Positions 1,251 to 35,477 of a stretch of 64,000 bases of DNA are shown here, one piece after another; the first letter of the stretch is position 1; the number at the start of each line of letters is the position of its first letter. This DNA comes from Blastocladiella emersonii ATCC 22665. Taxonomy: Eukaryota; Fungi; Blastocladiomycota. The stretch is taken from the NCBI GenBank assembly GCA_025594325.1, contig JANHCV010000016.1, forward strand, positions 372,001-436,000, written 5' to 3'. Position numbers and translations under genes: made by a program. The notes under the pieces are model-generated. The model did no database searches and was not told where the DNA came from. It saw only the letters and a list, made by a program, of their open reading frames with translations.

Positions 1251-1429
1251 GAGCTCCATAAAGTGTGGGTTGGCCATCGAAAACACCCGGATTCAACGCG
1301 GTTGAGACGCGCACAACACCTTGTCACTGACGCGCTCGGCCCTCAGCTTGTTCCTTAAAGCTTGCACCATCAAAGAGTCAAGTACGGAATGCTAATTTAT
1401 ATATATAAGCGAGCTCTCCCAAACGACGT

Positions 1430-3532: not shown

Positions 3533-4041
3533 GGTTGACAGCGGCGCGGCGAACAGGGATCCAGCGCGGTTGAATGAGCGACCTGAGGCGGACGAGGCGG
3601 CCGCCGTGGCGCACGAGGGATCCGCGAAGAGGAACGCGAGGGCGCGAGGCGGTCACGCCGCGCCACATGCGCCGTTGCTGTCTCGCGGCCGCGTCTCACG
3701 CCGCACGTGATGGTCGACACCGACGCGTTTCGCGACGCGTTTTTGCTCCACGCCGGCGACGCATCTCCACCCACGCGCTGCGCCGCGCCGCGCGCGCAAC
3801 AACACGTCCCGCTTTGCCTCCAACCGGCGCGAGACACGGTGCTCGCCCGCCCCTCGCAACTCAATGAAACCTGCTCGCGCCCGCCGTGTGTCCCGCAGAC
3901 CGACGCGTCCCGCCGCCGCGCGCTCCCGCCGGCCGCCGCTGTCTCTGCCGCCGCTGCCGCCGCTGCACAAGAGCCTCCTCCTACCCAAACTCGCAACTGC
4001 CCTCTACAACCCACTCGCCGCCGCCGACTCCGACTCTCACC

Positions 4042-12200: not shown

Positions 12201-12993
12201 GGGATGCAGACGGCCGTTGCGTTCCACACGACCATTTAGTGCGTTTCCTTCCCCCTTGCGTTCTCTCGTCGCTCAAGCTCACACCACGTCACGGTGTAGC
12301 CCCATGGCGTCGGTCGCCCTCGAGGTTGCGCGTCCGGGCACCAACTGGACGCAGCGCGCAGCGACGCTCAACACGCAGGTGCACGACCTGCGCGTCGCGC
12401 TGCGACAGATCAACTCGCTCGTGTCGCGGTACGATGACCCGGCGCCGACGCGCGCGCTGCTCACGTCGGCGTACGCGTACACGGCGACGTCGAACATTGA
12501 CGCGTCGCTCGCGGGCACGGCTTCGTCGCGCGGGTACGCGTACGTGCTCGAGGACGCGCTGCAGGCGGTGCAGACGATCGCGGGCGCGCCCGGCGGCGGG
12601 TCGGCGCCCGACGCGAACACGCACGCGGCGCTGGCGGCGTTTCTCGGGAGTGTGCAGGGCGACCTGGATCTCGGGACGCGGCTGCTGCTGGAGCGGCACC
12701 TGGGCGATATCGACGCGGCGTCGCAGGCGGACGGCGCCATCAACCTCAACGTGCACGTTGCCGTCATCTTCCTCGTGGTCGTCGTGCACTACGGCCTCTT
12801 TCGGTTCCAGCAGCGCATGCGCGAGGACATCAAGCAGAACTGCCTGCTGCTGCTCATGGTGCCGCAGGCCGTCATCAACCGCCAGAAGCCGCTCAAGCAG
12901 TACCTGCGCGGTATCTCGCAGGGGATCAGACGGCACATGGGCGCGGCAGCGGCGGATGCGCCCGCGGGGTTGCACAGTGTGCGCAGAACGTAG
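6255..12993 (+). CDS. About 2120-aa multi-TM / TmcB-TmcC-like TPR / multi-PAS membrane sensor; 6 exons; intact copy
   Basis: Exons 6255-6472, 6547-8221, 8288-8601, 8714-11618, 11682-12238 and 12300-12993 sum to 6363 nt in one frame. N-terminal TM bundle, TPR-like helical region, three FixL-like PAS repeats with HDxYL, further degenerate PAS, C-terminal TM segments. Confidence 0.85.
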
Positions 12994-13071
12994 ATCTTAG
13001 ATTCATCGTTGATTGACAACACACACTTGGGTGGTGTCCTTGGTCGAGCGGCGGCGGCGTGCTTGTCGGGC

Positions 13072-13239
13072 TCAGGGCGCCTGCGGCTGCGGGAGGGCGA
13101 GCTCGGGCACGTTGAGGAACGGCGACGCGAAGGCGAGGTTCGCCTCGAACTGGACGGGCGCCTCGTCGGTCTTGTCGGTGGGCGCAGCGCGGGCCACCAT
13201 GGCCATGGCGATGAGAGCAAGAATGTAGAAGTGCTTCAT
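13072..13239 (-). CDS. 55-aa secreted micro-ORF, signal peptide plus PhoD pro-segment (left copy); could be a phoD remnant
   Basis: MKHFYILALIAMAMVARAAPTDKTDEAPVQFEANLAFASPFLNVPELALPQPQAP*; accATG context, strong C/G third positions, motif shared with both PhoD N-termini. Confidence 0.6.
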   Translation of the reverse strand: MKHFYILALIAMAMVARAAPTDKTDEAPVQFEANLAFASPFLNVPELALPQPQAP

Positions 13240-13322
13240 GGTGACGACGTTTGAAATGTGGTTCGGTATAACGGAAGTGTGCGTAGCAGAGTGTGTCGAC
13301 CCAGAAGCCGCCTCGTCCGCCG

Positions 13323-13372
13323 CGCGGCGCCACAGCGGTTGTCGGTGCCCCGCCGCACGCTGTGGCGCCGCG
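13323..13372. promoter_or_regulatory. 15-bp perfect inverted repeat with 20-nt loop upstream of the micro-ORF (left copy)
   Basis: Mirror of 24551-24600: CGCGGCGCCACAGCG-N20-CGCTGTGGCGCCGCG. Confidence 0.4.
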
Positions 13373-13667
13373 CCACTTCCCTCCTCGCCTTCACGTCATC
13401 CAGCGGCCCACGTGACGACCTGCGCCACCATCCTTCCCTCTTCTCCGCGGTCGCCCCTCGGCCGATGCTCGCTCCCTTGTGACCGCCACCGTCTACCACA
13501 CGTTTGTCTTCGCTTCCCGCCCAACCCACTCCTGCTCTTCCTGTCACGTCTGGGCCGCTGGCGTCCCCTCCCCTAGCCGTGGGATCGCTGCTCCTCGTGG
13601 CCCTCCCTCGCCCCGCGCCGCGCGCTTGGCGAGGTCGACGCGGCCCGCGGTCGCACGCACCCTGGGG

Positions 13668-14100
13668 ACCGAGCCTCACCTCGGTACGGCGAGTCCGCCG
13701 TTCCTCGGCGGGCGCTACTCAGCTTTTCGCTGGTCCCCAACGCGCGCGTAGCGGATCTACGCATCACCTCCTTCACCTTCACCTTCACCACCTGCTCCCG
13801 CTCCTCGATCCTCTCTCCGGCCGGCACCCAATCTCCGTCACCATCTTTCCGCTCTCCCACTCCTCTCCTTCGCCTTCGCTCGCATCACACCCTCGCCTCC
13901 TGCCCGCTTTCCTCCGCACACCCACCCTCTCGTTCGCCTGCCATCGTCTGCTTTCATATATCGGATTCTGTTTCTCCCAAGCGGCTTCGCCAGGGCGATA
14001 CCCCGTCGGCAAGTCCGAGGAGCCCGGCGGCCACACCGTGCAAGTAGGATGCACTCGCACAGCGTCTCCAAGAGACTCGAGCCTTCTACTAGGGTCCTGA
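13668..14100 (-). pseudogene. Putative 5' portion of a gene interrupted by the duplication (gene Y)
   Basis: Minus strand is open up to the arm boundary (APAEERRTRRTEVRLG) after an acceptor-like GCTGAGTAG; joins in frame to 31181. Start not identifiable. Confidence 0.3.
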
Positions 14101-14432: not shown

Positions 14433-16316
14433 CTAGGCAATGTACGACGACGTGATCCGGTTCGACCCATGGGCGCTCTCAAACGCCGCGCCGAGGAGCT
14501 CGGCGTCGCCGTCGCGGCTCTTGATGGAGCGCACGTACCAGTACTCGTTACGGACCTTCTCCTTGGTGAAGGTCGTGAGCATGTACCCGTGGCGGTACAG
14601 GTCGACGTACTTGGCGCCCTTTTTGAACAGCTTCACGACGGGTGCGCCGAGCTTGTTGAGGAAGCCCGAGTCCTGCGCGGGGGTGCTCGAGGTGACGCTC
14701 GGGCCGGCAAACTCGACCATCAGGGACCCCTTGCCGCTCGATTTGTCGTACTCCGAGTCCAGGTACACGTCCAACGCGATACTCGAGTGGAAGTCGCCGG
14801 TAAGCGTGAGGATCGGCGGGTGCTTCTTGTCGCGGAGAACACGCAGGAGGTTGTCGCGCGTCGTCGGGTAGCCGACCCACATGTCGCCCGTGACCGACCA
14901 CTCGTACTCGAAGATCTTCTCGGGCATCTGTGCGATGATCACCTGGTTGGCGAGCACCACCCAGTGCGCCGTCGAGTTGGTGATGGTGCCGTGCAGCCAC
15001 TTCTCCTGGTCGTCGCCCATCATCTTGCGCAGCGGCCGCTCCTTGCCCGTCCATCCGTTGCCGCCGGGGGCCGTGCGCTCGGACCGCGTGTCGAGCATCG
15101 CCAGGTCGATGAAGGACCCGTACTGGAACTTGCGCCAGAACTTGAGCATCTCGCCCACGGCCTGCGGGCGGATCGGCATGTACTCGAAGTACGCGCGGCC
15201 AGCAGCGAGCTAGATAGAGCCCGATCGTTAGCGTGGCACGCCGAGCATGTCTCGTGAGACGCGAATGTACCTTGCGCACGGCCCACGGACCGTCCTTGGC
15301 GTCCGAGTGCTTGAACGAGCCGTTGGTCCACGTGTTGTCGGCAAACTCGTGGTCGTCGGGGATCGCGAGCCACGGGAGCAGGGCGAGCATGGCCTGCTGG
15401 TCCTTGTCGCGCTTGTACTGGGCGTGGCGGGCGCGGTAGTCGGCGAGCGTCGTGATGACCTTGGCCGGGATCGGGTCGCGCTCGGGACCCATGTTGCCGC
15501 CGACCGGCTGGTAGCCATCGAGGTCGTACTCGTAGCTACGGGCGCGAGGAGCGGGAGAGGTCAGTGCGGACCGCGAGTGATCGCGGCAGCGAGTCGCGAA
15601 CGTACATGGCGTCGCCAAGCATCAAGACGGCGTCAATCTCGCTGGCGCGCTTGGCAATGTTGCGGTAGGCGTGGAACAGGCCGTGCGGCATATTGGCGCA
15701 CGAGACGACGGCGAACTTGACCGAGTTGAGGTTCGCGCCGGGCGCGGGCAGCGTCTTTGTGGTGCCGACGGGCGACGTGACGCCGTTGGCCGAGAAACGG
15801 TAGTAGTAGCGCGTCGCGGGCGAGAGACCCGTCACGTCGACCTTGACCGTGTAGTCGATGTCGGCCGAGGTGAGGACCGCGCCGGACTTGATGATGGCCG
15901 AAAAGTCCGCGGTCGTCGCGACCTCGTACGTCACGGCGACCGAGGCGTCCTTGCTCGTCACCTTGGTCCAGAGGATCACGGCGTCGGCGAGCGTGTCTAG
16001 ATGATGCGTGGGTGGGAGTGTGAGCGAACGAAGTGACTGGAGTTCGTCGCGAGAGTGACGTACCGCCCGAGGCGATGCCGTGGTCGAACGTGACTGCGCC
16101 AGCATCGCGCTTGCGCAGGGCATGATCGAGCGCCGCATCCGAAGGCGCCAGCGCGAGATCGGGAAGGTTCGAGTAGGGCGAGGCGTAGGCGAGGTTGTCG
16201 GCGTAGCGGGAGACGAGCGCGGCCGGGTCGGCGGCGGCCTCGGGCGCGGCGGCGTTGGCCACCGCGGCGACCAGGGCCGTTGCCACAAGGAGGAGGGTGA
16301 TGGGAAGGCGCGCCAT
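14433..16316 (-). CDS. phoD: Secreted PhoD-type alkaline phosphatase, paralog 1; 4 exons
   Basis: Signal peptide; pro-segment ending LRKR; FDHGIASGD..VILWT, VSCAN, LGDAIYEY, DDHEFADN, LDTR, TGDFH. Introns 15997-16063, 15536-15605, 15210-15270. Confidence 0.93.
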
Positions 16317-17229
16317 GGTTGCGGCGGCCCAGCAGTCTATAAGTTGTCTATCTGGGGGCAAAGGGGAGGGAGGGCGAGCCGAACCCTGAAAATCGGCAAG
16401 TCGGCGACAACATCCGGTGACACGCGGTACGCGCTTGCATGCAAGGGACCTCATGACCGTGGTGGCGCAGCCGCACCGACAGAAGTGACGCAACCGCGGC
16501 AAGCGTGCATCGGCCCGCGTTTCAGGTCGTGCGGGAGAACCGGCGGCACGCTCGAAATTAATTGCTGTCCACGTGCACGCCCATTGTCCTCGGTGTGGCG
16601 AAGGCGCGCGTACGCGCGGCCGGCGACCACGCTCGCGTGCGGCTGCGACCAGGGCTGCGACCTCCTGCGACCCGCGACTGCACCAAGCTCGCAGCCCGCT
16701 GCTCCATCACCATCGACGACACGAGGCTGCCCGCATCCCAAGTGCCGGACCAAGTCGGCGACGGGCGGGAAGCCACTGCTCGTCAAGTGCAACGGCTGCC
16801 AAACCTTGAGAGGCCGGCGATCCGCTTCGTCCGCGGTCGGGGGTGGCCCACAGTGCGCCGGGGTACGCCAGCTCGATCCCTTGCGCCGGATCACTCGGTG
16901 TCCCGTTTGCAAGCGTGGTGGCCCCACTGTGGCGAGACGCGTCGTCGGTTTGAAACAAGGACGAGCGAGTCCGCGCGTGCCCTCGCGACCGCAAAGGCAA
17001 CGTTGGTTTGCACTGCAAAAATGAAGTTACGCAGGGAGGATCGGGAAATACACCGCGCGCTTGCCTTTCATTTTTAATCACGGCGGGGTCCCCGCACATG
17101 CGGGGGTTTCCGACCTTGGCCGTTGGCCCTTCAAAGGTCGACGTCGCTCTGCCCTCTCTCCTCCCCCATCCTCTACCCATACCTTTGGTTCAGCTGCTTC
17201 GCGAACATCTCTTGAGGGTCCCCCGTCAA

Positions 17230-20200
17230 ATGACTGGGCCGATCTCCTCCTCGCCCGCCCCCGCTACCGCCACCCTCGCTCTCGATCCACCCCCGGAGCC
17301 GCCCACGCCGGTCCCTGCCCCGCCGACCCTCGCCGCCGCCTTGTCGATCCCCTCGGACGCGCTGCATGCCGATCTCGCCATGTCCATGTCCATGACCGCC
17401 AGCACCCACGACGCCGCCCTGCTCCACTCGGGCTGGGACGCGTCGGCGTCGGTGGCGCTTGGCAGCATCGCATCGCACCTGTTCGCCCCGACCGGCCCCA
17501 CGACGCCCGCCGAGGAGATCGCCAGCGGCCAGTTCGAGGCCGCGCAGCTACATCTCGCGCTCCAGGCGGCCGGGATGCACGGCGATCAGCGCCACGATCA
17601 CGGCCACGGCCTCGACCACGACCACGACGCGTCTGCGGCGGCCATGGTCGACTTTGACGCGCTCGCGTCGCACTACGCCGCGACCACGGCGGCTGTCCTC
17701 GGCGACCACTCGGTGGCTGCGTCGCCGTCCGTCGACCTCGTCCACCACGGCCAGTACATGCTCCTGTCCGAGTCCACGATCGTCCACGGTACGCGCGCTA
17801 TCGCCCTCTCCCTCTCCCTCCCTCCCGATCACGGCGCGCTGGGCGACGGACGCGTGGCCAATCAGCGACGGCGGGCGTGTGGCGATGGTATCGCGACGCG
17901 CCGCGAACGCGTGCGAGGCGAAACGTGCCCGGGTGGGGCCACCTTCCCGAACCGCGTTGTCCTCTCCGACCCGAACCGCGCTGCCCGCCTTCGCTCTCCT
18001 TCGCTGCCGCCCCGCTCCCCGTCGCCTCCGCCGAATTCGCCCCTGGCGCGCCCAACTCTGTCATGATGCAACTCTAACCTGATGCAAACGTAATCTCGCC
18101 CGCACCACTCGCGCTCGCAGGCCTCGCCGCGCCAGTTCCCACGCTGCTGCACGGCACCGTCGACAGCAGCTGCAACGGCGAGCACCAGCCTCTCGCCACC
18201 GGCTTCCCCGACGCGCCCGACGACTTTGCCGCCGCTATCGCCATCGCCGATGCGTCTGGTGCCGCGTCCGTGCCCGTCCTGGCAAGCGCGGACACGCCCG
18301 GCGCCCCGGCGAGTCCCGGGTCGCGCTCCGGCTCCGACTCACCGCCGGCCGGGCTCGCCGGGCCCGCCGTCGCGCTCGACGTGAACGCGCAGTGGGACGC
18401 GCTGCTCGGCGACATCGCCGCCGCCCCGCCCGCCTCGCCCTCGTCGGCCAACTGGATCCTCGCGGCCGCTGCGGCTGGCATCACGCCCACCCCGCTGTCG
18501 CTCGTCACCTCGGCTACCAGTGCGCCCGGTAGCACTGTCGGCAGCATCGTCTCGTCGCCCGTCGCTGGCACGCTCGAGTCGTTCGTGGCCGCGAATTCGA
18601 GCGGGCTTCCCGCTCCGCCGTCGCCGCCCTCGACCTCGTGGTACCCGCCGCCCGGCTCATCGATTGACCTCGCCGGCATCACGACCGACCACTCGCTGCC
18701 CGTCGTCGTCTCGCAGCCGTCCACCATCATGCCCGATCTCAACGCCGTCGTGCCGATCCACGACTACGCCTCGAGTTCGGCCCTCCCCTACATCCCCGAG
18801 TTTGCGCAACCGCACCACCACCAGTTCCCGGCCTACCACTTCCCGCACCTCGCCTACCCTCCCTCTCCCGAGTCGCCGCTTCCCCCGCTCCTGTTCGGCG
18901 CTTCCGCGGCCGCCGCCGAGTCCCACGACACCTCGATGCTCGATGCGTTCGTCGCGACCGCTTCCTCCATGCCGCAGTCGGCGCCCGCGATCCTCGAGGG
19001 CCCGATCCAGTCCTACTTCCCGTCGATCCTGGCCGACACCGCGCCGCTCGCCGTGAGCCCGTCCGTCATCATGCACCGCCGCAGCCACTCGCTCTCGTGC
19101 CTGACCTCGGCCTCGGAGGCGGCTGCCGCCGCGACCGCCGCCGCGCTCCACCACGAGCTCGCCTCGACCTCGCCCACCGTGTTCGGCTTCTCGGCGCCCA
19201 ACTCGCCCGTCGTGCTCTCGCAGCCCGACCTCGATGCGTCTCTCGCCGACGCGCTCCAGCCGCCGCGCAAGCGCCCGCGCAGCAAGTCCGAGTCGGTCGC
19301 CCTCGCTTCCGGTACCGGCAGCGGGCATCTCGGCCACCTGCAGCACCTGTTCCACCACCCACACGCGCACTCGCTCCAGCACATGTACAGCCAGCCGCCG
19401 CTCGAGTCGCCGGTGCCTGTCGGCCTGTCGGCGTCGAGTCGCTCGAATCTTCGCCCGCTTCTTCCTGCCCCGACGGCAACCGCTTCTTCGGCTTCCGACG
19501 CACCAGCAACCACGTCGGCCGCGCCTGCTTCGACATCGACGCCCGCCGGCGCCTCGGTCGACCAGATCACGCCCGCCGCCTCGCCCGCCATCACCAAGGT
19601 CGCCAACCTGCTCAAGCGCAAGCGGTCCGTCTCGTTCGTCGACCAGCACCCCGACACGTCGGCGCTTTCGATCCCCGTCTCGACTGCCGGGTCCATGCAG
19701 CAGCAGCAGCGCCCGACGATCCCGATCCCGCCGCCGGCCCGCCCCGTGGTCGTGCGCAGCCAGCTCGACTCTGCCGCCGCCAAGCCGCCGATGCCGTCGC
19801 TCCTCGGCGCGAGCGGCAGCGGCAGCGGCGACTCGGACCCGGACGAGTACGACGGCGGCGAGGGCGAGCTCGGCCTCGACGGCGGCGACATCGACAACGG
19901 CGAGCCGCGGCCGTTCATCTGCGGGTTCGACGACTGCGCGGCGCGCTTCTCGCGCAACCACGACCTCAAGCGGCACGAGCGCATCCACACGGGCGAGAAG
20001 AAGTGGAAGTGCCTAGAGTGCGAACGCGCGTTCGGCCGCCGCGACGCCCTCGCCCGCCATACGTCGGCGCCCGGCGGCCGCTGTAAGGCCGTGTTCGGGA
20101 AGCGCCGGCTCAACCGGATCCGCCGCATCTCGGCCGTCGCCACGCCCGCCGCGCGCGGCGTCCCCGACGAGGTGCTCATCGAGGTCGTCGCGCGTACCGC

Positions 20201-20381
20201 CGCGTCCGAGTCGGCCCCGTCGCCCGCGGTCGATATCAAGGCTGCCGACTCGGCTGTCGCCGCCGCGCTCGCCAACGTCGCGTCCTCGGCCTCGGGGACG
20301 CCGCTGACGAGTCCGTCTCGCACCACCACCACCACCACCACCACCACAACGGCTTCCACCACCACCCCCTCAGCGGCCTGA
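17230..20381 (+). CDS. C2H2 zinc-finger transcription factor, two C-terminal fingers, Crz1-like finger spacing; 2 exons
   Basis: CGFDDCAARFSRNHDLKRHERIHTGEK linker and CLECERAFGRRDALARHTSAPGGRC; basic NLS-like KRKR. Intron 17789-18120 (GTACGC..CTAAC..CAG), phase 1, links the two ORFs. Confidence 0.85.
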
Positions 20382-20883: not shown

Positions 20884-23027
20884 ATGGCCGTCGCCCGGAC
20901 CCGCCGCTCGATGCGGTCGACGCACCTCCTCCTTCTCCTGCTCGTCGCCGCGGTGCTGTGTGTCCGCACGACGCACGCCATCGAGATCGGCGGCTCGATC
21001 ACGACTGCCAACACCGAGTCCGTGGCCGCGGCCAACGACGCGGGTGCCGACGACGATGACGACTTCCTGCCGCCCGTCGAGGAGCTGATCGACCACGTCG
21101 AGGACAACATCGCCTTCAAGTCGCCCTTCTCCAACATCCCCGACCTCGCCGTCCCGCTCCACGACGAGCACAAGCGCTCCATCATGCTCGAGCGCCGCGA
21201 GCCCCGCCGTAACGGCGGCGGCAGCCGGCCCAAGGTCGCGCAGGGGTCGGTCCAGTTCAACCACGGCCTCGCTTCTGGCGGTACGATCATGACGGTTGTT
21301 CCGCTGTACTTGAAACGAGCCGCGTCGCGGCAGCCCCAGCCCTCATTGTCTGCGTGCGCCTGACCAGACCCCTGTTTATAGACCCACTCGAGGACCGTGT
21401 GATCCTCTGGACCCGGGTGACGCCCGCGACGCCGCGGCCGGTGCCCGTGACCGTCACGTACGAGGTGGCAACGGACGCGCACTTCCGTCGCATCGTGCGC
21501 CGCGGCGCGGTCCTCACGTCGCCCGACGTCGACTACACGGTCAAGGTTGACGTCAAGCAGCTGTCGCCGCTCACCACCTACTACTACCGGTTCAAGGTGC
21601 CCGCCGCCGGCACCACGTCGCCCGTCGGCCGCACCAAGACGCTGCCGCGGCCCGGCGCCAAGGTCGACGCCCTCAAGATCGCCGTCGTGACGTGCATCAA
21701 CGCCCCGCACGGGTTCTTCCACGCCCTCGGGCATATCGCCGGGCGTAACGATATCGACCTCGTCTACGGCGCGGGCGACTCCATGTACGTGTTTGCGACG
21801 CGTTTGTGGCTCGGATCACGGCTCCCATCACCAACTCACCTCGACCACTCCCACCTCGTGTCTAGCTACGAGTACTCGCTCGAGGCGTACCCGAGCCCCA
21901 TCAAGGCCATGCCTGCGTCGCGGAACCCGCAGCCGGCCAAGATCATCGCCACGCTGTCCGACTACCGCATCCGCCACGCCCAGTACAAGGCCGACGCCAA
22001 CATGAAAAAGTTCCTGGCCTCGGTCCCGTACGTCGTGACGCTCGACGACCACGAGCTCGCCGACAACGCGTGGGCCGGCGGTTCGCAGGACCACCGCGAC
22101 AGCGTCAACGGGCCGTGGTCTGCTCGCAAGGTACGGCCGCTGCATCTTCCTTCGCCCATGTTTGCCACACCCGACTGACCTCACTCCTTGTCTATAGCTC
22201 GCCGGTCTGCGCGCCTTCCACGAGTTCATGCCGATCCGCCCGGCCAAGGCCGAGGGCGAGCTGCTGCGCGTGTACCGCAAGTTCCAGTACGGCAGCCTCG
22301 TGGACATGGTGATCCTCGACACGCGGTCCGACGGCCGCGACCAGCAGGCCAAGGGCAACCGCGACACGCGCCGGCTTATCGGCAAGGCGCAGGAGAAGTG
22401 GCTGTACGACTCGCTCGGCTCGAGTCGTGCGACCTGGCGCCTGATCGGCAACCAGGTCCTGTTCGCGCCGGTCCCGCAGAAGATCCTCAAGTGGGAGATT
22501 GAGGTGACGAGCGATACGGTACGGTGACTGGGTGGGTGGGGAGTGGGCTCGAGTTGTCGCTGACTTACGACTTCATGTAGTGGTCGGGCTACCCCGCGGC
22601 CCGTAGCGGCCTCCTCAACTTCCTCCGCGACCACAAAATCAACGACACCGCGTGTATCACGGGAGACTTACATGCTTCTTACGCCAGCAACCTGTTTATT
22701 GACGGGAAATACGACAAGAGTTCGGGCGCGGGGTCCCTGATGACCGAATTCGTCGCCCCGTCGGTCACCTCGGCCACCCCCGTCAACGACAACTGGTTCC
22801 TCGCCAAGCTCGCCGGCCCGGTCCTCGGCTGGTTCAATAAGGGCGCCAAGTACATTGACCTCAAGCGCCACGGGTACATCACGATCGACTTGACCAAGCA
22901 GCGCCTCCGCACTGAGTACTGGTTCACCGATAATGTCAAGGAGGCCGACGGCGACCACCATTACCTCGGTGCCGCCTTCGAGCAGCGCGCCGGGTCCAAC
23001 CGGATTACGTGGATGCGCGAGTACTGA
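20884..23027 (+). CDS. phoD: Secreted PhoD-type alkaline phosphatase, paralog 2; 5 exons
   Basis: Signal peptide; FNHGLASGDP..VILWT, VTCIN, GDSIYEY, DDHELADN, LDTR, TGDLH. Introns 21281-21381, 21785-21865, 22131-22197, 22519-22580. Confidence 0.93.
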
Positions 23028-23146: not shown

Positions 23147-23561
23147 GAAACGCGTCGTAACCCTGAGTGGTTGATGAACTCCTTGACAGCAGTCAGCGAC
23201 CAGCGCAGATCCGGTTCCGTGGTTCCGAACCAGGTTCCAAACCGTGGTCAGCCTTGGCCCACGTTGGCCACCACGAGCGATGGATGGTTTGCAAACCAGC
23301 TTCCTTTGCGGGGTTAGAGCACCAGACGGCGCCTGCACGAGCACGTTCTCGTCGTCTTCGGTTGACCGCACCGGCTCCCTGCTCTCGCATCAGGATCAGG
23401 GTCTTGATGAAGTTGTAGATCCGGGCTCGACCTCGCTCACACCAACACAACGCGCGAACCCAGCGAGCTCGATCCACCCAAGCGCCTTCCCATCGCCCTC
23501 ATCAACTTCAGCCGCCTAGCGCGCGTCGCGCCGCGAACATCTCGAACCATTGCTCGAAACG

Positions 23562-23567
23562 ATGCGA

Positions 23568-23603
<36 letters not shown>

Positions 23604-24218
23604 TCGCCCGACCGGCCCGAGCCCGTGCGGATCAACCCGTACAGCGGCGAGAGCTTCGCCATGACGGTGAAGCCTGAGTACGAGTACGGGTTCGGCCGCG
23701 AACGCGGCAGCAGCATGTCGTTTGACAACCCGCCGCCCGCGAAGCCTGCGCCTCCACGGCCCCGTATCGACCGAAAATGCTGCTTCGGCTGCATGGACAT
23801 CAAGGCGGGCGTGATCCTCCTGCTCATCCTGAATCTCTTCGTCGGCCTGCTCCTGTTCTGCGCGCTCATCGTCTTCGGCGCGCTGTTCACCAAGGACACG
23901 AGGATCGACTCGGTCTACCTCGTCGCGTACATCGGGATCCTGGCGTGGGGCGCGTGGACGGTCGGCCGCGGCCACCTCGCCGGGTTCCGGTTCTTTGTCG
24001 GTGCCCGAGTCGGCATCACGCTGCTCGAGCTCGCCGCCATGATCGCGCCCGTCATCTTCTGGCCGGCTAACCCGGACCGCGACGACACTTCGCTGCTCCA
24101 GATGATTCCCGTCAACGCATTCGAGGTGTTCATGACCGTCGTATGCTGGCGGTACATTCCCGTCATGGCCGCCGAGTCCGAGGCCAGGGCGGCAGCAGCA
24201 GCGGCCCGGCTCCCCTAG
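23562..24218 (+). CDS. Four-TM membrane protein with CCxxC juxtamembrane motif (LAPTM/tetraspanin-like topology)
   Basis: KCCFGCMDIKAG followed by four hydrophobic segments; SN-repeat N-terminus from an AACAGC repeat; intronless. Confidence 0.75.
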
Positions 24219-24550
24219 TACATGATTGCATCAAGATAAATAGCGTTTTCATTCACCCCAGGGTGCGTGCGACCGCGGGCCGCGTCGACCTCGCCAAGCG
24301 CGCGGCGCGGGGCGAGGGAGGGCCACGAGGAGCAGCGATCCCACGGCTAGGGGAGGGGACGCCAGCGGCCCAGACGTGACAGGAAGAGCAGGAGTGGGTT
24401 GGGCGGGAAGCGAAGACAAACGTGTGGTAGACGGTGGCGGTCACAAGGGAGCGAGCATCGGCCGAGGGGCGACCGCGGAGAAGAGGGAAGGATGGTGGCG
24501 CAGGTCGTCACGTGGGCCGCTGGATGACGTGAAGGCGAGGAGGGAAGTGG

Positions 24551-24600
24551 CGCGGCGCCACAGCGTGCGGCGGGGCACCGACAACCGCTGTGGCGCCGCG
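24551..24600. promoter_or_regulatory. 15-bp perfect inverted repeat with 20-nt loop about 85 bp upstream of the micro-ORF ATG (right copy)
   Basis: 24551-24565 CGCGGCGCCACAGCG pairs with 24586-24600 CGCTGTGGCGCCGCG. Confidence 0.4.
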
Positions 24601-24683
24601 CGGCGGACGAGGCGGCTTCTGGGTCGACACACTCTGCTACGCACACTTCCGTTATACCGAACCACATTTCAAACGTCGTCACC

Positions 24684-24851
24684 ATGAAGCACTTCTACAT
24701 TCTTGCTCTCATCGCCATGGCCATGGTGGCCCGCGCTGCGCCCACCGACAAGACCGACGAGGCGCCCGTCCAGTTCGAGGCGAACCTCGCCTTCGCGTCG
24801 CCGTTCCTCAACGTGCCCGAGCTCGCCCTCCCGCAGCCGCAGGCGCCCTGA
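24684..24851 (+). CDS. 55-aa secreted micro-ORF, signal peptide plus PhoD pro-segment (right copy)
   Basis: Same sequence as 13072-13239; ATG 24684, TGA 24849-24851. Confidence 0.6.
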   Translation: MKHFYILALIAMAMVARAAPTDKTDEAPVQFEANLAFASPFLNVPELALPQPQAP

Positions 24852-24929
24852 GCCCGACAAGCACGCCGCCGCCGCTCGACCAAGGACACCACCCAAGTGT
24901 GTGTTGTCAATCAACGATGAATCTAAGAT

Positions 24930-27900
24930 CTACGTTCTGCGCACACTGTGCAACCCCGCGGGCGCATCCGCCGCTGCCGCGCCCATGTGCCGTCTGATCC
25001 CCTGCGAGATACCGCGCAGGTACTGCTTGAGCGGCTTCTGGCGGTTGATGACGGCCTGCGGCACCATGAGCAGCAGCAGGCAGTTCTGCTTGATGTCCTC
25101 GCGCATGCGCTGCTGGAACCGAAAGAGGCCGTAGTGCACGACGACCACGAGGAAGATGACGGCAACGTGCACGTTGAGGTTGATGGCGCCGTCCGCCTGC
25201 GACGCCGCGTCGATATCGCCCAGGTGCCGCTCCAGCAGCAGCCGCGTCCCGAGATCCAGGTCGCCCTGCACACTCCCGAGAAACGCCGCCAGCGCCGCGT
25301 GCGTGTTCGCGTCGGGCGCCGACCCGCCGCCGGGCGCGCCCGCGATCGTCTGCACCGCCTGCAGCGCGTCCTCGAGCACGTACGCGTACCCGCGCGACGA
25401 AGCCGTGCCCGCGAGCGACGCGTCAATGTTCGACGTCGCCGTGTACGCGTACGCCGACGTGAGCAGCGCGCGCGTCGGCGCCGGGTCATCGTACCGCGAC
25501 ACGAGCGAGTTGATCTGTCGCAGCGCGACGCGCAGGTCGTGCACCTGCGTGTTGAGCGTCGCTGCGCGCTGCGTCCAGTTGGTGCCCGGACGCGCAACCT
25601 CGAGGGCGACCGACGCCATGGGGCTACACCGTGACGTGGTGTGAGCTTGAGCGACGAGAGAACGCAAGGGGGAAGGAAACGCACTAAATGGTCGTGTGGA
25701 ACGCAACGGCCGTCTGCATCCCCTGCAGCGAGCACTGGACGCCCTGCTGGACGCGCGCGAGGCGGAACAGGACCAGGACCAGCGACGGGATCATGATCCA
25801 CGCGTACAGCGTCGCGACGATCACGTACGCGCGGTAGTCGGTGCCCGCGACCATGGGCTTGGACGACCTCTTGTCCTTTTCGCTCGGCCGGAAGAACGAC
25901 GCGCGGTGCAGAGGGTTGAACGGCGATCCTGGAACCGCGGCCATGGATCCCGTCACTGCATGCGTCGATGCGGCCGCGGCGGCCGCGGTGTGCGATGCGA
26001 TGGCCTCGGCGCTGTCGCCGTGCTCGTGGCTCGAGTGTGAGAGGGATTGCAACTGCTCGCCCTCGGCGGGACGCGTCTCCTCGCGGTCCTCGTCCTCCCA
26101 GTCGGCGTCGTCGAGCTCGTACACCTGGTACGCGAGATACTGGATGACGTGCCGCGGAATTCCGGTGAGCAGCACAAGCGCCTTGGACCGCTCGCGGTTC
26201 AGGTTGCGGACCTCGGGCCACAGCACGAGGAGGAACACGGCCTACATTGTCGCTCAGTGGTCAGTGTTGAGTCCGGCCTCGAGTCACGCGAAGCGAGGGC
26301 GTACGAGAGCGATGATGGGCAGCGAGAGCGTCGCGATGATGACAGAGTACGTTTCTGCGTTGGAAAAGTTGATGACCACGTTGTCAATCTTGTCCGAGAA
26401 GAAGAAGACGGTCGACAGCAGCTGGTCCTTGTTGGCCGTGAGAAAGTTCCAATGCCGGCTGGCCGTCGGGTCGCCCGTGACGTTGGCCATGGCCGCGCAC
26501 GCCGCCGACATGCGACTGAACACTTGCCACACGTCGGGGATCACTGCCTCGGTCGCCGCCCGCGGGTCCGTGAGCACAAACAGCTTGAGCGACACGTCGA
26601 CAGGCGTGTCGATCTGCAGGGGCTGGTTCGGCCGGGACATGGCGTTGAACGCCGTGCTGAGCTCCGACAGTCGCTGGCCGTACGCAACGAGCTTGCCGCG
26701 TATGTCCTCGGCGCACAGCGGCGACGACGCGAGCGCGGGCGCCGCGGGCACCACCACGTTGCAAAAATACAGCTGCTCCGTCTTCTGCAGGATCGAGCTG
26801 ACGATCGGGACGTGGTCGGCGGCGACGCGTACCATGTTGAAGTCGGGTTTCCCCTTGACGCTGAACACGACGACCACGGCGATGGCCGCGAGCGCCGTCA
26901 CGATGAAGCTGACCCACAGCCGCCGCTGCAGCGCGCCGTGCAGCGGGTTCGTCTTGGAGCTCTTCCACGCGAGGATCAGCCGCGAGTTGCGGTCGCCGCG
27001 CGTCGTCTGGCTCTCCGTGTCGCTGCCCGACACGGACGCGTTGTCGACCACCGACTGCGTCGCGACCGTGTCGTCGTCTGTGTCGTACGCCGAGTTGACG
27101 ATGCGCGGGTTCGCCGGCGTCTCCGACTTGAGCTGCTGCGGCGTCTTGAGCGTGAGCACCTTGGCCCCGGTCGCGGTCGCGGTCGCGCCCGAGTCCATGG
27201 TCCCGGCGCCCATCACGGACGCCGCACCGAGCGACACGGACACGCGGCGCGGACCCGTCGGCGTTGGGCTTGCGCCGCCGTGGAAGACGGGACAGCCGCC
27301 ACCGCCGCCGCCGCTCGCGAGGCCGTCTTCGTCAGGAGGAGCGAGACCGGCGGGATCGCGGACCGAGCGCTGAATCGAGGCCGCCCGAGGTGCGCGAGGA
27401 TCGAGCTCCGACTCGCTGTCCTCGGGGACAGACGGCGGGATGACGCGGGCGCGGGTGACCTGCGGGCTGGTCATCGACTGGCCCGGCGTGACCATGGTGC
27501 TGCTACCCCCGCTGCTCCCGTTCGGGTCCGCGGGGATCGAGTCGCTGGACCGGTGGCTGTGGCTGCGCGACAGAATGTCGGGCACGGACCCGTCCTCGGG
27601 CCGGCGCAGCGCCGTCGTCCACATGGCGCTCGGCGACAGCGACGAGCTGCTCTCGCCGGCGCCGCCGCGGGTCCCGCCGAGGTGCAGGCTGCGGATAATG
27701 TCGGGGCTGACCTTGTACGCGATGGGCCCGTGGACGACGCGGACCATAAAACTCGCCATGCCCGTCTCTGGGTCGGTGCGCGGGCACACCTCGACGTTGA
27801 CAGGAAATGTCGACCCGTCGCGGTGCACCGCGGCCAGCGCCTGCCGCGCGTACCCGCCCGACTCGGGGTGCGTGACGACGCCCTGGATGTGCGTCGCGAG

Positions 27901-30900
27901 CGGCCGGCCGAGCAGCTGCTCAATGTCGACGCCGACCAGCGCGGCAAAGTCGTCGTTGGACTGCGTGATCTTGCCCGCCTCGTCGAGCGTGATGAGGCCC
28001 TCCTTGAGGATCAGGTCTTCGGTCTGCAGCTCGATGCCGTCGTCGAGCTCGCACCCGCTGACCAGCATCGGCAGCAGCGTCTTGTCGCGGCGCAGGACGA
28101 GCGTGTAGAACTGGGTCGTGGGCAGCGACGCCGTGATGGTGTCGAGCAGCGTGCGCAGGTTGGCCTGGTGCGGCGCCTGCGGGACGGGCGGGAACAGGAC
28201 GGCGAGCGAGCGGCCGGGCAGGTCGGGCGTGGCCCACCGCTCCTTGAAGAAGGCGCCCGTGGCCGTGATGTGGCCGGACATGCTGACCTGGATGCGGTTC
28301 TCCTCGCGCGTCTTCTCGGCGCGCGGGTCGTAATTGTCGTTGATGCGGTTAATAGTCGCCTTGTACATCGGCTCGGTCCCGCCAAACGAGCTCGGCACGG
28401 CCTGCACGCGGATCCGCACCGTAAACACGGTGCCGTCGCGGTGCACGGCCGGATAGATGCGGCCCTCGAGCGAGGTCATCATTACGCACGCGCGCGTGCG
28501 CCGGTGCCTGTCGAGATAGCTATCGTGGAACGACCGGTACGGCTCGGGCATCAGCATCTTGACGTTCTTGCCCACGAGCCCGTCGCGCGCCCACCCGAAG
28601 AGGATGTACGTGTCGTCGTTGACTGACTTGATCTCGCCGCTGCCCGTGATGCACACCTCGGCCGTGAGCTGGCGCAGGTCGAGCATCGTGCCCCGAAAAT
28701 ACGTGTCGCCGTTGATGACGAGCTCGTTGACCTCGAGCGACACGGGGATGAACTTGCCCGACTTTTCCTTGGCCATGAGGCAGCGGCCCGTCGTACCGAT
28801 GACGTGCGGCACGCCCGTCTCGAGGAACCGCTGCAGGTACGAGTCGTGGTGCGAGGCGTGGTCCGGCGGCATGATCATGTTTACGTTTTCGCCGACCATC
28901 TGGCTCGACGAGAACCCGAGCATCGTGGTCGCAAACTTGTTGTGCATCTGGATCTTGCCCTCCTTGTTGATGATGATCATGGCCGTCGAGTCGAGGTCGG
29001 CCACGGGCGTGATGAGGCCTGCGAACAGCCGCTGCGCGCCCTTGAGCTCGACGACCTGCAGGTCCATGGGGAATGCGTAGCCCTTGGCGTGCTGCCCGAA
29101 GATCCGCTGCTTCGGACCCATGAAGCGCTTGACACCCGTCTGGCGGTACCGTTCGAGGTAGAAATCGTGGAAGGACCGCCACGGGTGCGGCACGATGAGG
29201 TTGATTTTCCTACACAACGCATGGGCGTGAGTGTCGCGAGCTCGCGAAGTCGGTGGCGGCCATGGTCATGATCACGGCCATGGTGATCACGACCACGGCA
29301 AAGGTCATCGCGAGAGCGTACCGAGACACGAGGCTCAGCTTCGAATCGTAGCCGAACACCTTGAGCGCGCCCGGGTTCACGTCCGTGATGGTGCCGTTCG
29401 CGTCCATGGTGATGACGGCCGACTTGCTGTAGTGCGTGAGCGACGCGCCCGACATGCCGCCGCCACCGCCCTCGCCACCGCCGCCCGACAGGTCGCCGCC
29501 GGATCGCGCGAGCTCCTCCTCGCGGGCGCGCGCCGCCTCGGCCAGGTTCGAGTACGTCGCCGACAGCTCGCTGTCGTTGAGCACGAGCCGCGAGAAATCC
29601 GAGTACGCTTGCAGGATGTGGGCTGCTTTCGGATACTACACGTGCGGTCAGGCTCGCGCTGAGTGACCACGGCCACGGCCAGGAATTCGTGCGAGACGTA
29701 CCCGCGACAGCAGCTGCTTGTAAAACTCGTCGGCGCGGCTCGTGTTGGTCATGATGGCGCGCACCGACGCCTCGAACGCCTTGAACTGCACGCGGCGAGA
29801 CAGGAGCAGCACCCAGAATTGCTGGATCGAGTCGACACACTTGGCGTGGTACCGCTTGGCCTCGGTGTAGCTGCGCTGGAACTCGACGTACTGCAGCAGA
29901 TCGAGCTTATCCATGCCGGCAATCACGTCCTGCGTCGCGGCCTTTTGCTCGTGGTCCATGCTCCGGCAGAAGAGCAGGAACCGCTGCGCGAGCGACGGCT
30001 CGAGCTGCGGGATCCCGTCCCACGACGCCGCGTCCGTCGTCAGCACGGGCACGCGGTCGGGCGTCGCGGCCCGCTCGATCTGCAGCGTGTCGGCAAAGGA
30101 GCAGTACAGCAGGTGCACAGCCGCGTCGTTGGGGTGGATCTGCAGCGCCGCGCGGTACTACGCCTCGGCCGCGTGCCAGGCCGCCGTGCGCTGCAGGATC
30201 CGACCCACGATCTCGACGCAGTTGACGTCGCCGAGCAGCGACATGACGAGCGGGTTGGCGATCAGCCGGCCGTGTGCCGAGTGCGGCGCCTCGTTGAGCA
30301 TCTCGGTCGACGCGTCGAGACGGACCACCGGGCACCCGCCGCCCCCGCCGCCGCCGCTCAGGCGCGTCGCGCCGCCAATGCTGCCACCGATACCGCTCGC
30401 GAGCGCCGCGCCGATCTCGGACGTGAGGTTGGTGCGTGACCCGTGCGCCGTCGACGGCATGCCGCCGTGGTGGTGGCGGCCGCCGGGCCCGCCGCGGTCG
30501 GGACCCGCGGCCATGGCCGCGTCGACCTCGACCTGGACCAGCATCGCGAGCCGCTTGAATGTGGTGATGCGCGCCTTGGCGAGGCGCGACCCGACGAACC
30601 CGGCGGGCAGCAAACCGATGACCATGACGAAATCGATGACGCGGTTTTCGGCGACGTAGTTGGTGGGCGACGCGGCGGATACGAGGCCGCAGAACGACAA
30701 CCAGATGAGCGAGCACGTCAGCGCGCTCTGCCACCGCGTCGCGGACGCGTGGTGGAACGGCAGCGTCGCCAGTAGCTGGTACTCGAGGAACACGGTCATG
30801 GCGAGGTAGCACACGGCCGAGACGACGGGCGGCCACACGCCGTGGCCGAGGTACTCGCCCATGATGACGAACGCGACGGTGAAGACCACCGAGAACATGT

Positions 30901-31193
30901 TGAATATGGGGTTCGAGCACGCCAGGATCTCGTTCTTGGGGTAACGCGGCGTGACGGACGTGAGCGTCGTGGCGAGGAGCAGCGGGACGAGGATCGCCGT
31001 GGCCAGGATGCCCGCGATGGCCGGCGCGAGCGACGTGCTGGGCTGGAAACACGGCGTCGACTTGAACGACACGAGCGTGTTGGTGGCCGGGTGGCACATG
31101 AGCGGGTTCAAGAGGATGCTGACGCTCGACACGACAAAGTACTGCAGCACCAGCGAGATGAGGACGTTGAGCGCCTTGACCGCCCACAGCTGC
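24930..31193 (-). pseudogene. 5'-truncated, nonsense-carrying copy of the PAS sensor gene
   Basis: Lacks the promoter, exon 1 and the first ~180 nt of exon 2; TGG(Trp) at 7763-7765 is TAG here (30158-30160). Confidence 0.85.
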
Positions 31194-32055
31194 CTGAGGT
31201 CTTCATTCATCCTGATGAGTTGAAGGCGGTCACGGTCAAACGCCCTGACATTCTCTCGCCAAGGTTCTACAACCGTGATAAACAGGATGTTCCGCAGGCG
31301 ATGCGGGCCTTCAATGCGGAAGTGCTCAAGGTGCTTCCCAACGCGCCCCACAGCGTGTGCTTTTGGTTGCTCAACGCTTGCCGCATGCTTCACGACTCGG
31401 TCGACGCCCGCGACCCTTCTTTTGCGCAGCGCTACCAAGAGGTCATGCATTTCCGGCGAGTATGGTGCCGCTTGTTTGCAGGACCGCTCACCGCGACTTC
31501 ATCGCCTCCGCAGCACGTTCTGAACTGGCCGGTTAAAATGATCGAGGGCATGTTCTCCATCGCCGAGTCGTTCTTGTCCATGCACGCCGCTTACGCTCGG
31601 GCGAACGTGGGCAAGCTCAACGTTCCTCCCTTAGTGGCGCGAGTGGGCACGAGCGACGCGGACGAGAACTTGTTCTCGGAAATCCGCTTTGCATTGCAGC
31701 AGGACGGGAGGGCGATCAGCAACCGCTTGTCGCACGCAGACATCTCACTTAAGCTCAGCAAGATCTACGCGTTCATGAGTCTCGCCATGGTTTCACACGC
31801 GGAACGAGGATACTTTCATTTCCCCGTCCGTCGCCACAGCACCCGACCAATGCGATGCTTGGTAGCCCGGACAGCCCGTTCCTCCTCGGCCGGACAATCG
31901 ACATGATCGAGCGCACGAGGACAATCCGTGCTGTACGAGCCCTCGCTCATCGCGATGGCGCAGGCCGAGGTCGCGCACGAGCAGGTCGCTCAGCGCTGCC
32001 CGCGCTGCGCCACAAGTCGCTTGATTCCGTCGCGGTTAGTGATACACGTGTATAA
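31181..32055 (+). pseudogene. Headless 3' portion of an unknown gene (gene Y) abutting the outer end of the right arm
   Basis: About 240 open codons (RPQLPEVFIHPDELK...RGYFHF) of globular composition with no start or promoter, since the upstream sequence is the antisense PAS copy; probable intron near 31826-31864; AT-rich 3' end about 32050-32090. Confidence 0.55.
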
Positions 32056-32287
32056 TAATAAAAAGCGACTGGAATTTATTCCACACGACTAAACGCGGGG
32101 AGGTGGGGCGGGGAGGGGAGGGGCGGCGAGTCGACCCGGCGCGAGACGTGAACCGCGAGACACGCGAGACGCGTCGCGCCACGTCGCGCCACGTCACCCA
32201 GAGTGGCAGGTGGCCGGCCGTTTACCCGCTTGACTATCCCGTGACGAAATGATCCCGCGCTGGCGGCCGATGACCTCCACCCCCCTG

Positions 32288-32480
32288 GCGGCGGGGCACC
32301 GACGACCGCTGTGGCGCCGCACGGCGGACGAGGCGGCTTCTGGGTCGACACACGGCCGTCTCCCGTTCGCTCCGCTACGCACGCTCCGTTATACCGAACT
32401 GCCTCTGGCGGCACAGCACGGCGCGGTGCAACGCGACCAACATCTCGCCCAGCATTTCGAATCTCATCACAAGTTGAAGC
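32288..32480 (+). repeat. Third, degenerate copy of the micro-ORF promoter/5'UTR
   Basis: 32288-32353 matches 24567-24632 at 64/66 nt; then GCTACGCAC..CCGTTATACCGAAC and CATTTC..TCAC..TGAAGC blocks; ATG position reads GTTG and no ORF follows. Confidence 0.8.
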
Positions 32481-32614
32481 GAGCGCAAACGTGTTACATA
32501 TTCTTTCCTCTTCATCATCAAGTCGGTTCCACTTCTTCCACTTCATCTTCAAGGCACGCAAATCGAAATTCAAACTAAACTAATCCTAGCCCTCCTTCCC
32601 CACTCGTGGCGAGC

Positions 32615-35477
32615 TTACACGCCACCGCCGGACCGCTCCGTCGACAGGCCGCGCGAGAAGGCGGGCAACCGGTCGCGCATGGCGGCGAGGTTCTCGTGCA
32701 GCGAGTTGGACGCGCGGAGCTCGCGCAGCGCCACGAGCACCTCGAGCACGTCGTTGAACTCGAGCGCGCGCTTGCGGTCGACGCCCGTCGTCGCGTACAC
32801 CTGCGCGAGCAGCGTCGACTCCTCGTCGGCCGAGATGGGCGTTGATGGCGCCGCCGCTGCCACTGCGGCGGCGGGGGTCGCGGCCGAGCTGCGGCCGAAC
32901 CACGAGGAAGACGAGGAAGCGGGCTTCGCGGCCTTGGCGGAAGCGGCGCCGTCGTGGTGCTGGATCCAGCCGACCTGGGCGAGCAGCGCCTCGAGCATGC
33001 CGCGCGGGATGCTTCCGTCGCTGTCCTTGTCGTAGTTGGCGAAGGCGGCACGGAACGCCTCGACCTCGTCGCGGGTGAAGTAGGCCTGCGAGAGGCCCTG
33101 CGACATGTACTGCTCGAGGGCGGCGCGGGTGGCGGACCGGAGGTCGGCGCGCGAACCCGCCGACGCCGTAGCGACGCCGTTCTCGAGGTTCGGCACCTCG
33201 CGGCCCTCGGGGTACTCGATGAGCGACGGCGAGGGGAGGCCCATGTACGTGAGGAACTCCATGGCGCCGTCGTACTCTGCGCGGCACCGGGCCTCGTCCC
33301 AGCCGAGCTCGTTCTGCATGATGGCAATGACCTTGGGCAGGGCCTGGGCGGCGGCGAGCGAGTTGAGGAACGCGAGGCGGGTGCGGCGCGCGAGCACGTC
33401 GACGGCGGTGCACGCGTACTCGCGGCGGACCGCGTAGCGCACCTCGGCCTCGAGGTACGGATAGTTGCCGACGAGGCGCTTGCCGAACAGCGGCCACGAC
33501 TTGCCCGTGGCGCGGGCGAGGGCGGCGACCGCCCACGCGCGGTCGCCGTACGACGACGCGAGGTGCTTGGCGACCTCGGTCTCGAGGCCGAAATGCTGCA
33601 CGAGCTTGATGAACATGGTCTTGGAGTAGCCGTGCGAGCCAATGAGCAGCGTCGACTCGGTGCGCGACTTGGCGTGGGTCGGCTCGAGCTGGAACGTCTC
33701 GATGGCGAGGTCGACCGTCTCCTCGGCCATGCACCGGTACGTGGTCCACTTGCCGCCGGCGATGGTGAGCAGGCCCGACGGCGTCACGTGCAGCATGTGG
33801 TTGCGGACGAGGCCGGCGGTGGACGACGCGGCGGGGTCGCGGACGAGCGGGCGGATGCCCGACCACGCGGCCAGCACGTCGCCGCGGCGCACCTTGACGT
33901 CGGGCGACAGGTAGCGGCGGACCTCGGACAGGATCCAGTTGATCTCGTCCTCGGTGGCGCGCGGGTTGGCCGAGACGTCGGTCGGGGTGTCGGTGGTCCC
34001 GGCAATGGTGCCGCCCTGCCACGGCAGGAAGAAGATGACGCGGCCGTCCGACGTCTGCGGGTCGAGCAGGCCCATGTCGGCGGGGGCGTAGTAGTTGGGC
34101 AGGATGATGTGCACGCCGGCCGAGGGCGCGACAATCTCCTCGGCGGTCGGCGCGTCGAGCTTGCGGATGCCGTCGGTGAAGGGCCCCGTGGCATTGACGA
34201 CGCCCTTGGCCTTGACGGTGAAGGTCTCGCCGGTGAGCGTGTCGCGGCACACGGCGGCGCAGATCTGCGGCACGTCCTTGCCGTCGACGTCCTTCTTGAC
34301 GAGCTCGACGACCTCGACGTGGTTGGCGACGGTGGCGCCGTGCGAGATGGCCGTGAGGGCGAGGGCGACGTTCATGCGCGAGTCGTTGTGCTGGCCGTCG
34401 TAGTAGACGAGGGCGCCGACGAGGTCGTCGGTGCGCAGCATCGGGAAGGCCTCGAGGGCCTTGGTCTTGGACAAAATGTACGACGACTCGAGCGCCTCCT
34501 TGCCGGCGAGCAGGTCGTAGGCCTTGCACCCGGCCCAGTAGTAGGGCAGCTGCCACCACTTGTAGAGCGGCAGCATGATGGGCAGCTGGTAGGCGAGGTA
34601 GGGCGCGATCTCGAGGAAGGTGGCGCGCTCGTGCAGCGCCTCGCACACGAGCTTGTACTGCTCGTAGTCGAGCTCCATGAACGCCTTTTCGAGGTACCGC
34701 ACGCCGCCGTGGACGAGCTTGGTGGACCGGGACGAGGTGCCTGTTTTCGTGGAAGTGATGATGGGGTGAGTGATTGTGCAGGCAGGGCAGAATTTTCACA
34801 CGGGCGGGCGGCAGGGCGTCGCAGGTAAGGTTGCAGGATCACTGGATGCGAGAATCGAACCCAGCGCCGCGCGCGCGCGCAAACCCCTTGCCTGGGCGCT
34901 GCCCGCGTGAAAACGCAAAGGGCGGGACGGACGGGAGCTGAGCAAAGCGGATGCTGCGGACCGAATCCGAGCCCCACGCGCGCGCGAGGCGAGCGAGCAA
35001 CACAAACAACCCCACAACAAAGGCATGAAAAGACGCACCAGCCGAAAAGTCGTCGCGCTCGACGAGCGCAACCTTGAGCCCGCGGGTCGCCGCGTCGAGG
35101 GCGACGCCGGTGCCCGTCGCGCCGCCGCCGATGATGAGCAGGTCGAACTCGGCGGGGTCGCGCGCCGAGTTGGCGTCGCGCTCGAGCGGGGAGCCGTCCT
35201 TGGCCTTGCCCTGCAGGGCGTTGAGCAGCTCGGAGCGCGTCGGGAGCGCGGGCGGCGCCTCGAGGACGGGCGGGCGGCCCGAGGCGGGGTCCGCATCCGC
35301 CAGAATGCGCGGCATCCAGATCGAGTCCGTGTCGGCGTCGATGCCGCCGGCGCGCAGCCGCTGCAGGCGCGCGCGGTTCGACTGCACCGACGAGTACGTG
35401 AAGACGCCCGCCGCGGTGCCGACGGCCGCCGCGGCGGCGAGTAGTGGTCGGCGTCGGTTCGTGATGGCCCGCCACAT
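32615..35477 (-). CDS. GUT2: Mitochondrial FAD-dependent glycerol-3-phosphate dehydrogenase with C-terminal EF-hand-like domain; 2 exons
   Basis: Presequence; [58 protein letters not shown]. Intron 34741-35038, phase 1. Confidence 0.95.

Follow-up and report, generated by a model that had tools for sequence, protein, structure and literature searches.

Small, separately encoded proteins homologous to the N-terminal pro-region of an enzyme are known among the protease inhibitors. The stand-alone propeptide-like inhibitors of MEROPS families I9 (yeast Pbi2, Pleurotus POIA1) and I29 (mouse CTLA-2, Bombyx BCPI) are proteins with measured inhibitory activity that are conserved between species and that fold, or bind, as defined domains. 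No precedent for a propeptide-like regulator of a phosphatase was found in a literature search. The PhoD phosphatases are defined by the Pfam families PhoD_N (PF16655) and PhoD (PF09423) and are represented by the Bacillus subtilis structure 2YEQ. In the B. subtilis enzyme a Bacillus-specific C-terminal helix caps the active site and governs entry to it or its metal loading (PMC4223295). As regards the fungal enzymes, the search found neither a paper on a PhoD propeptide nor a description of the N-terminal arm of the chytrid and blastoclad PhoD proteins. A further class of described elements relevant here is that of truncated duplicates and gene relics, such as the 5' fragments of paralogues that segmental rearrangement leaves behind.

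The locus described in this work lies in a 64-kb stretch (hereafter the window) of contig JANHCV010000016.1 (assembly GCA_025594325.1) of Blastocladiella emersonii ATCC 22665, a water mould-like fungus. The assembly was made from PacBio HiFi reads with Illumina polishing, and genes were called by funannotate with ab initio predictors; the paper does not mention RNA-seq or a transcriptome (PMC9730499). Among the papers listed in a literature search none described B. emersonii RNA-seq, and a search for sequencing runs listed no RNA run and only four DNA runs of the source sample; contigs of three of them were used to check the duplication described below. A preliminary description of the window had reported an unannotated 55-codon ORF, present in two copies and encoding a signal peptide followed by a segment resembling the region that precedes the basic processing sites of two neighboring PhoD proteins. 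Both copies are present as described, but the ORF is not unannotated: in the NCBI annotation of GCA_025594325.1 each copy is already a called gene of 55 residues. The features referred to in the text are the following (window coordinates):

24684-24851, plus strand: ORF of 55 codons, ATG to TGA; lies in the inverted repeat's right arm; called public gene; codon log-likelihood 0.61 bits/codon
13072-13239, minus strand: second, identical copy of the ORF, in the left arm; called public gene
24684-24737, plus strand: signal-peptide-like first 18 codons of the ORF, with a hydrophobic core and an A-x-A end; aligns with PhoD signal peptides
24783-24830, plus strand: PhoD arm motif of 16 codons, NLAF.SP..N.P.LA; all family consensus positions present
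24852-24929, plus strand: 78-nt spacer from the ORF stop to the stop of the convergent PAS gene; Arg-rich in-frame text, codon log-likelihood -0.37 to -0.99
14433-16316, minus strand: phoD1, 561 aa, H9P43_009990; arm motif at 16149-16196
20884-23027, plus strand: phoD2, 610 aa, H9P43_009992; arm motif at 21106-21153
23562-24218, plus strand: predicted membrane-protein gene of 218 residues between phoD2 and the ORF; no Pfam family
6722-13667: left arm of the inverted repeat, 6,946 bp, 100% identical to the right arm; supported by contigs of the DNA runs
24256-31201: right arm of the inverted repeat, 6,946 bp; contigs of three DNA runs break at 24256
24567-24662, plus strand: block directly upstream of the ORF, with a degenerate third copy elsewhere in the window
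32288-32520, plus strand: degenerate third copy of this block, which may reach into the first codons; contains indels and lacks the ORF

The start codon stands in the context cacc-ATG, in agreement with the accATG noted before, and direct reading bears out the signal peptide as a hydrophobic N-terminus ending in A-x-A; the cleavage site was placed by eye, not by a computed prediction. The motif in the ORF reads NLAFASPFLNVPELAL and is identical to PhoD1 in 11 and to PhoD2 in 10 of its 16 positions, which substantiates the likeness originally claimed. At the DNA level, searches within the window matched the ORF to phoD2 with 78% identity over 68 nt (E 1e-9) and to phoD1 with 77% over 47 nt. The ORF had also been said to sit beside both phoD genes. 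It is indeed near them, the left copy 1,194 nt downstream of the end of the phoD1 CDS (14433) and the right copy 1.66 kb downstream of the end of the phoD2 CDS (23027), but it is not adjacent, as the membrane-protein gene intervenes on the phoD2 side. On its other side a giant PAS-domain gene converges on the ORF, and its stop codon is 78 nt past that of the ORF. Between the divergent phoD1 and phoD2 genes lies a gene, at 18270-20378, whose product has C2H2 zinc fingers close to the C-terminus.

Comparison with PhoD N-termini revealed homology along the whole ORF. A profile built from 30 such N-termini aligned with the ORF from Met1 to residue 54 with a score of 34.9 bits; in tblastn, residues 1-54 of the B. 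britannica PhoD matched it with 41% and residues 8-56 of PhoD1 with 45% identity. Like the chytrid and blastoclad branch of the family, the ORF product thus has a signal peptide followed by the arm motif. What follows in the family is absent. Exon 1 of phoD1, phoD2 and the Catenaria genes extends just past the sequence HG[VI]ASG, with an intron after it, and in all real family members examined the F.HG[VI]ASG block ends exon 1. The ORF does not continue to this block, and its alignment stops at position 57-69 of the 96 positions of the profile. There is no HG[VI]ASG downstream of the ORF on its strand, and a tblastn search of the 64-kb window found no PhoD-like piece outside phoD1 and phoD2, hence no catalytic remnant 3' of the ORF. 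Pfam identified no family in the ORF product; PhoD_N (PF16655), PhoD (PF09423) and the metal ligands are all missing, therefore the product cannot be a phosphatase and the ORF does not qualify as a member of the PhoD phosphatases. Taking into account the alignment over the entire ORF, the lack of any further PhoD piece in the window and the lack of a Pfam domain, sequence comparison indicates that the ORF represents a PhoD-family gene only as far as its first ~50 codons. Nor is there room for further exons, because the convergent PAS gene ends 78 nt downstream.

The coding character of the ORF was assessed with a codon log-likelihood model, for which five secure coding stretches in the window served as the training set. 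The ORF scored 0.61 bits/codon, as compared to 0.66 ± 0.23 for 55-codon windows of real genes, whereas all 796 of the 796 putative non-coding windows were below -0.05. The signal is confined to the ORF and ends exactly at its start and stop codons: the score was -0.55 for the in-frame 81 nt on the 5' side and -0.37 to -0.99 for the 45-69 nt following the stop. GC1/GC2/GC3 values of 0.69/0.40/0.91 follow the pattern of genuine genes, and there is no frameshift or internal stop. The gene-like codon score and GC pattern show that the ORF is not a product of chance. These results also bear on the in-frame text past the TGA, in which the preliminary description had seen a cleavage site plus mature N-terminus. 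The letters are as it quoted them, but, since the coding signal stops at the TGA and the stretch is not coding-like, the interpretation is weak; the Arg-rich text added merely 4.5 bits to the profile match. A longer frame interrupted by a nonsense mutation fits less well than a breakpoint just 3' of the motif followed by a few foreign codons.

The second copy named in the preliminary description is not independent evidence, as both copies are inside a perfect inverted repeat with arms of 6,946 bp located 10,588 bp apart, each copy 428 nt inside its arm. The unique 10,588-bp segment between the arms contains phoD1, the C2H2 zinc-finger gene and phoD2. In Logan contigs of three DNA runs the alternative flank at 24256 is the reverse complement of 13668-13697, and word depth rises from the unique part to the arm from 155 to 310-320, from 32 to 47-51 and from 4.4 to 7.8 in the three runs (~1.5-2-fold). 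The presence of both inner junctions in the reads and the raised depth show that the inverted duplication is real and that the arm exists in two copies. One arm truncates the giant PAS gene (1,975 vs 2,128 residues). Within the same gene, 25072-25108 has ~5-fold word depth in runs X1 and X2, the mark of a small multi-copy segment.

The region directly upstream of the ORF was copied on another occasion as well. The upstream block (~100 nt) matches 32288-32399 with 97% identity in its first 65 nt, and from there the alignment runs on to approximately the twelfth codon, interrupted by several indels. The third copy (32288-32520), located between two convergent gene ends near GUT2, has no ORF, no arm motif and no match to the PhoD N-terminal profile. 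The inverted repeat and this degenerate copy together show that the flank of the ORF was duplicated at least twice and that one of the copies decayed. The better preservation of the first 65 nt of the third copy may point to constraint on an element there or to gene conversion. A guess that 31202-31906 is a fragment of a P-element-like transposase had no Pfam support and was set aside. An Rfam scan of 23500-33000 gave nothing relevant, and neither did a scan for bacterial promoters and terminators, a method not applicable to fungal DNA. A CACGTG E-box is found at 24509-24514, 170 nt upstream of the ORF. As it is a single site, and as CACGTG is under-represented in the window (18 seen vs 34 expected), it was dropped as evidence for regulation of the ORF. 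Further CACGTG sites are at 16570-16575, ~250 nt upstream of the phoD1 ATG, and at 32045-32050, ~240 nt upstream of the third copy; collectively the sites offer a weak lead for Pho4-type regulation.

As to the parent gene, a maximum-likelihood tree grouped PhoD1 with one Catenaria protein (support 100/98) and PhoD2 with another (100/99). Since each pairs with its own Catenaria orthologue, PhoD1 and PhoD2 are old paralogues. The ORF is approximately equidistant from the two, and its likeness to them is limited to the codon-biased conserved motif; from these relationships, it is not a recent copy of either neighbor. One contig of DNA run X3 encodes ..SFEGNLAYQSPF.. and then joins the window sequence at 24797, matching the 3' part of the ORF. 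This contig probably derives from another part of the genome, as a more closely related PhoD paralogue or a further stub, and is a candidate for the parent of the fragment.

We estimate a probability of about 0.6 that the ORF is a 3'-truncated, still intact fragment of a third PhoD paralogue, and probably a leftover. This corresponds to what the preliminary description had put forward as its alternative, the 5' stub of a third phoD, which is the best supported reading given the alignment from Met1 on, the missing catalytic part and the rearranged region. According to this model, a segmental rearrangement with its breakpoint just past the motif probably made, or left behind, the fragment. The fragment retains the start codon and signal peptide together with the first half of the chytrid/blastoclad PhoD arm, and lacks the end of exon 1 with HG[VI]ASG, the PhoD_N domain and the metallophosphatase domain of the parent gene. 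The frame would continue for a few codons into foreign sequence before reaching the TGA, and later the fragment would have been copied passively with the 6.9-kb inverted duplication. Its intact frame and gene-like codons would lead ab initio gene finders to call a 55-residue hypothetical protein. If transcribed, it would yield a secreted peptide of 37 residues, encoded by 24738-24848, with neither catalytic part nor fold of its own, most likely without function. While the sequence data show that the ORF is homologous to PhoD, truncated, duplicated and coding-like, its origin by rearrangement and its lack of function are inferred.

The ORF resembles known truncated duplicates and gene relics in that it consists of the first ~50 codons of a multi-exon family, lacks the catalytic part, and belongs to a region that has undergone a recent inverted duplication and contains a degenerate copy of the flank. 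It differs from them in having no internal lesion, in its gene-like codons and in the retained start codon and signal peptide; on account of these features it could still be expressed. Partial homology with the rest of the gene missing is what is expected of a relic, disabling lesions or a lost coding signature are what the ORF does not have. The intact frame, the gene-like codons, the complete motif and the undecayed state of the ORF as opposed to the decayed third copy of its upstream block thus speak against a relic. However, all these points would fit a recent truncation and selection on the short ORF alike.

The strongest competitor of the truncated fragment, which we consider doubtful, is that the ORF encodes a secreted peptide that stems from the PhoD arm and functions on its own, whatever the function. 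Its appeal comes in part from the properties of the arm in the intact enzymes. The motif NLAF.SP..N.P.LA is conserved at the N-termini of the PhoD proteins of Blastocladiomycota and several chytrid orders. It is found ~10-40 residues past the signal peptide and frequently, though not in every member of the family, a dibasic site comes after it. In an AlphaFold2 model of PhoD1 (alignment of 52 sequences, mean pLDDT 91.4) residues 31-70 (window ~16107-16226, minus strand; motif at 41-56) have pLDDT values of 92-97, and the B. subtilis structure 2YEQ aligns with residues 71-561 only (Z 42.9). In the bacterial PhoDs of the alignment the export signal leads to F.HGVASGDP directly or through a short unrelated linker. 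The high pLDDT of the arm and the start of the bacterial core at residue 71 suggest that the fungal arm is a lineage-specific, well-ordered add-on predicted to dock on the core and to end at the dibasic site, which coincides with the start of the bacterial core.

The main inference of the preliminary description had been a free propeptide that acts in trans. The proposed action, by analogy with free propeptide-like inhibitors of proteases, is that the 37-residue peptide would bind the groove of the PhoD core in which the arm docks, and serve as an inhibitor, a folding aid or a decoy. The target of the decoy or aid might be an arm-less PhoD paralogue; alternatively the peptide could have acquired an unrelated new function. 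In its specific form, in which the free arm peptide would dock in trans on a PhoD core (an arm-less paralogue or processed PhoD1/PhoD2) and tune folding, metal loading or activity, the idea seems improbable. A functional peptide is favored by the intact ORF with its good start context and signal peptide, by gene-like codon usage sharply bounded by the ORF, by the preservation of every conserved position of the motif, by the predicted docking of the PhoD1 arm and by the dibasic sites that follow the arm in many family members. The active-site-capping helix of Bacillus PhoD (PMC4223295) may be regarded as a precedent for regulatory terminal extensions. It is likewise a lineage-specific terminal extension packed on the core, as the fungal arm is predicted to be, but the two extensions are at opposite termini and show no sequence relationship; by this analogy, a capping role of the fungal arm is a possibility.

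Several observations argue against function. PhoD1 and PhoD2 have an arm of their own in cis, from which a free one would face competition. The KR site of the PhoD1 model is inside a confidently predicted helix, which disfavors cleavage. When the 55-residue ORF product was modeled alone, the pTM was 0.25 and only the signal-peptide helix was formed; this lack of a confident fold suggests that, when not bound by a partner, the peptide would be disordered. The 3' end of the ORF is squeezed against the convergent gene 78 nt away, and the gene calls are ab initio, from an annotation published with no mention of transcript data (PMC9730499).

Stand-alone relatives were not found either. Searches of 5.8 billion proteins for products of 30-96 aa, performed with the single sequence and with a profile of 27 PhoD N-terminal sequences, returned only the ORF itself. 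The preliminary description had suggested looking for a conserved short ORF in related genomes, and no stand-alone arm ORF was present in eight PhoD loci (~170 kb) of Catenaria anguillulae, Allomyces macrogynus, A. arbusculus and B. britannica; this is a weak negative, as PhoD1 has no more than 57% identity in these distant relatives and the loci are not syntenic. The Catenaria orthologues of phoD1 and phoD2 are in a different gene neighborhood with no shared synteny. In all eight loci HG[VI]ASG follows the arm motif, and the two apparent exceptions could be explained. A Catenaria "truncated PhoD" of 208 residues was rejected as a stub, as the 4.8-kb, 99.98% identical tandem duplicate holds the whole gene; the two copies are at 1-4779 and 7581-12359 of the C. 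anguillulae MCFL01000024.1 stretch, and one PhoD is publicly modeled as 208 residues. The other exception, an arm-only segment in Allomyces macrogynus, was an artefact of assembly gaps.

The ORF shares with the MEROPS I9 and I29 inhibitors the design of a small, separately encoded protein homologous to an enzyme's N-terminal pro-region. Unlike them, it has no conserved relatives and no autonomous fold, and the PhoD arm itself is only a putative propeptide. As in the chytrid/blastoclad branch of the PhoD phosphatases, a signal peptide and the arm motif are present, but neither Pfam domain nor metal ligands.

It could also be argued that the ORF is the first exon of a longer gene that was modeled incorrectly, or that an assembly or polishing error truncated a full-length third phoD. 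A lone 5' exon could arise as a modeling artefact, given that exon 1 of the phoD genes ends past HG[VI]ASG with an intron. Yet neither HG[VI]ASG nor any other PhoD-like sequence is found downstream on the ORF strand, the convergent gene of 1,975/2,128 residues ends 78 nt past the stop, and contigs of three DNA runs cover 24603-25101, including the ORF and its stop, without a differing letter. We consider both variants very unlikely. A chance ORF with a coincidental resemblance to PhoD, conceivable in high-GC genomes rich in spurious ORFs (144 of at least 50 aa overlap 20 kb here), is refuted by the 34.9-bit profile match from Met1, the phoD2 DNA match within the window and a GC pattern and codon score typical of real genes and unlike those of all non-coding windows tested, which leaves it a negligible probability.

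If the ORF is a relic, as the truncated-fragment model holds, it is an ordinary by-product of segmental rearrangement. For the annotation the result is a caution: the 55-residue "hypothetical protein", present twice in the B. emersonii annotation, is a PhoD gene fragment. The conserved and apparently well-ordered arm of the chytrid and blastoclad PhoD proteins is a small by-product of the analysis worth noting. If action in trans on PhoD were true, no propeptide-like trans regulator of a phosphatase would have preceded the ORF product, which would derive from a truncated duplicate. If the ORF were expressed and under selection, it would clearly exemplify how the 5' end of an enzyme gene can give rise to a new gene for a secreted peptide, and would provide a handle on how the PhoD arm works.
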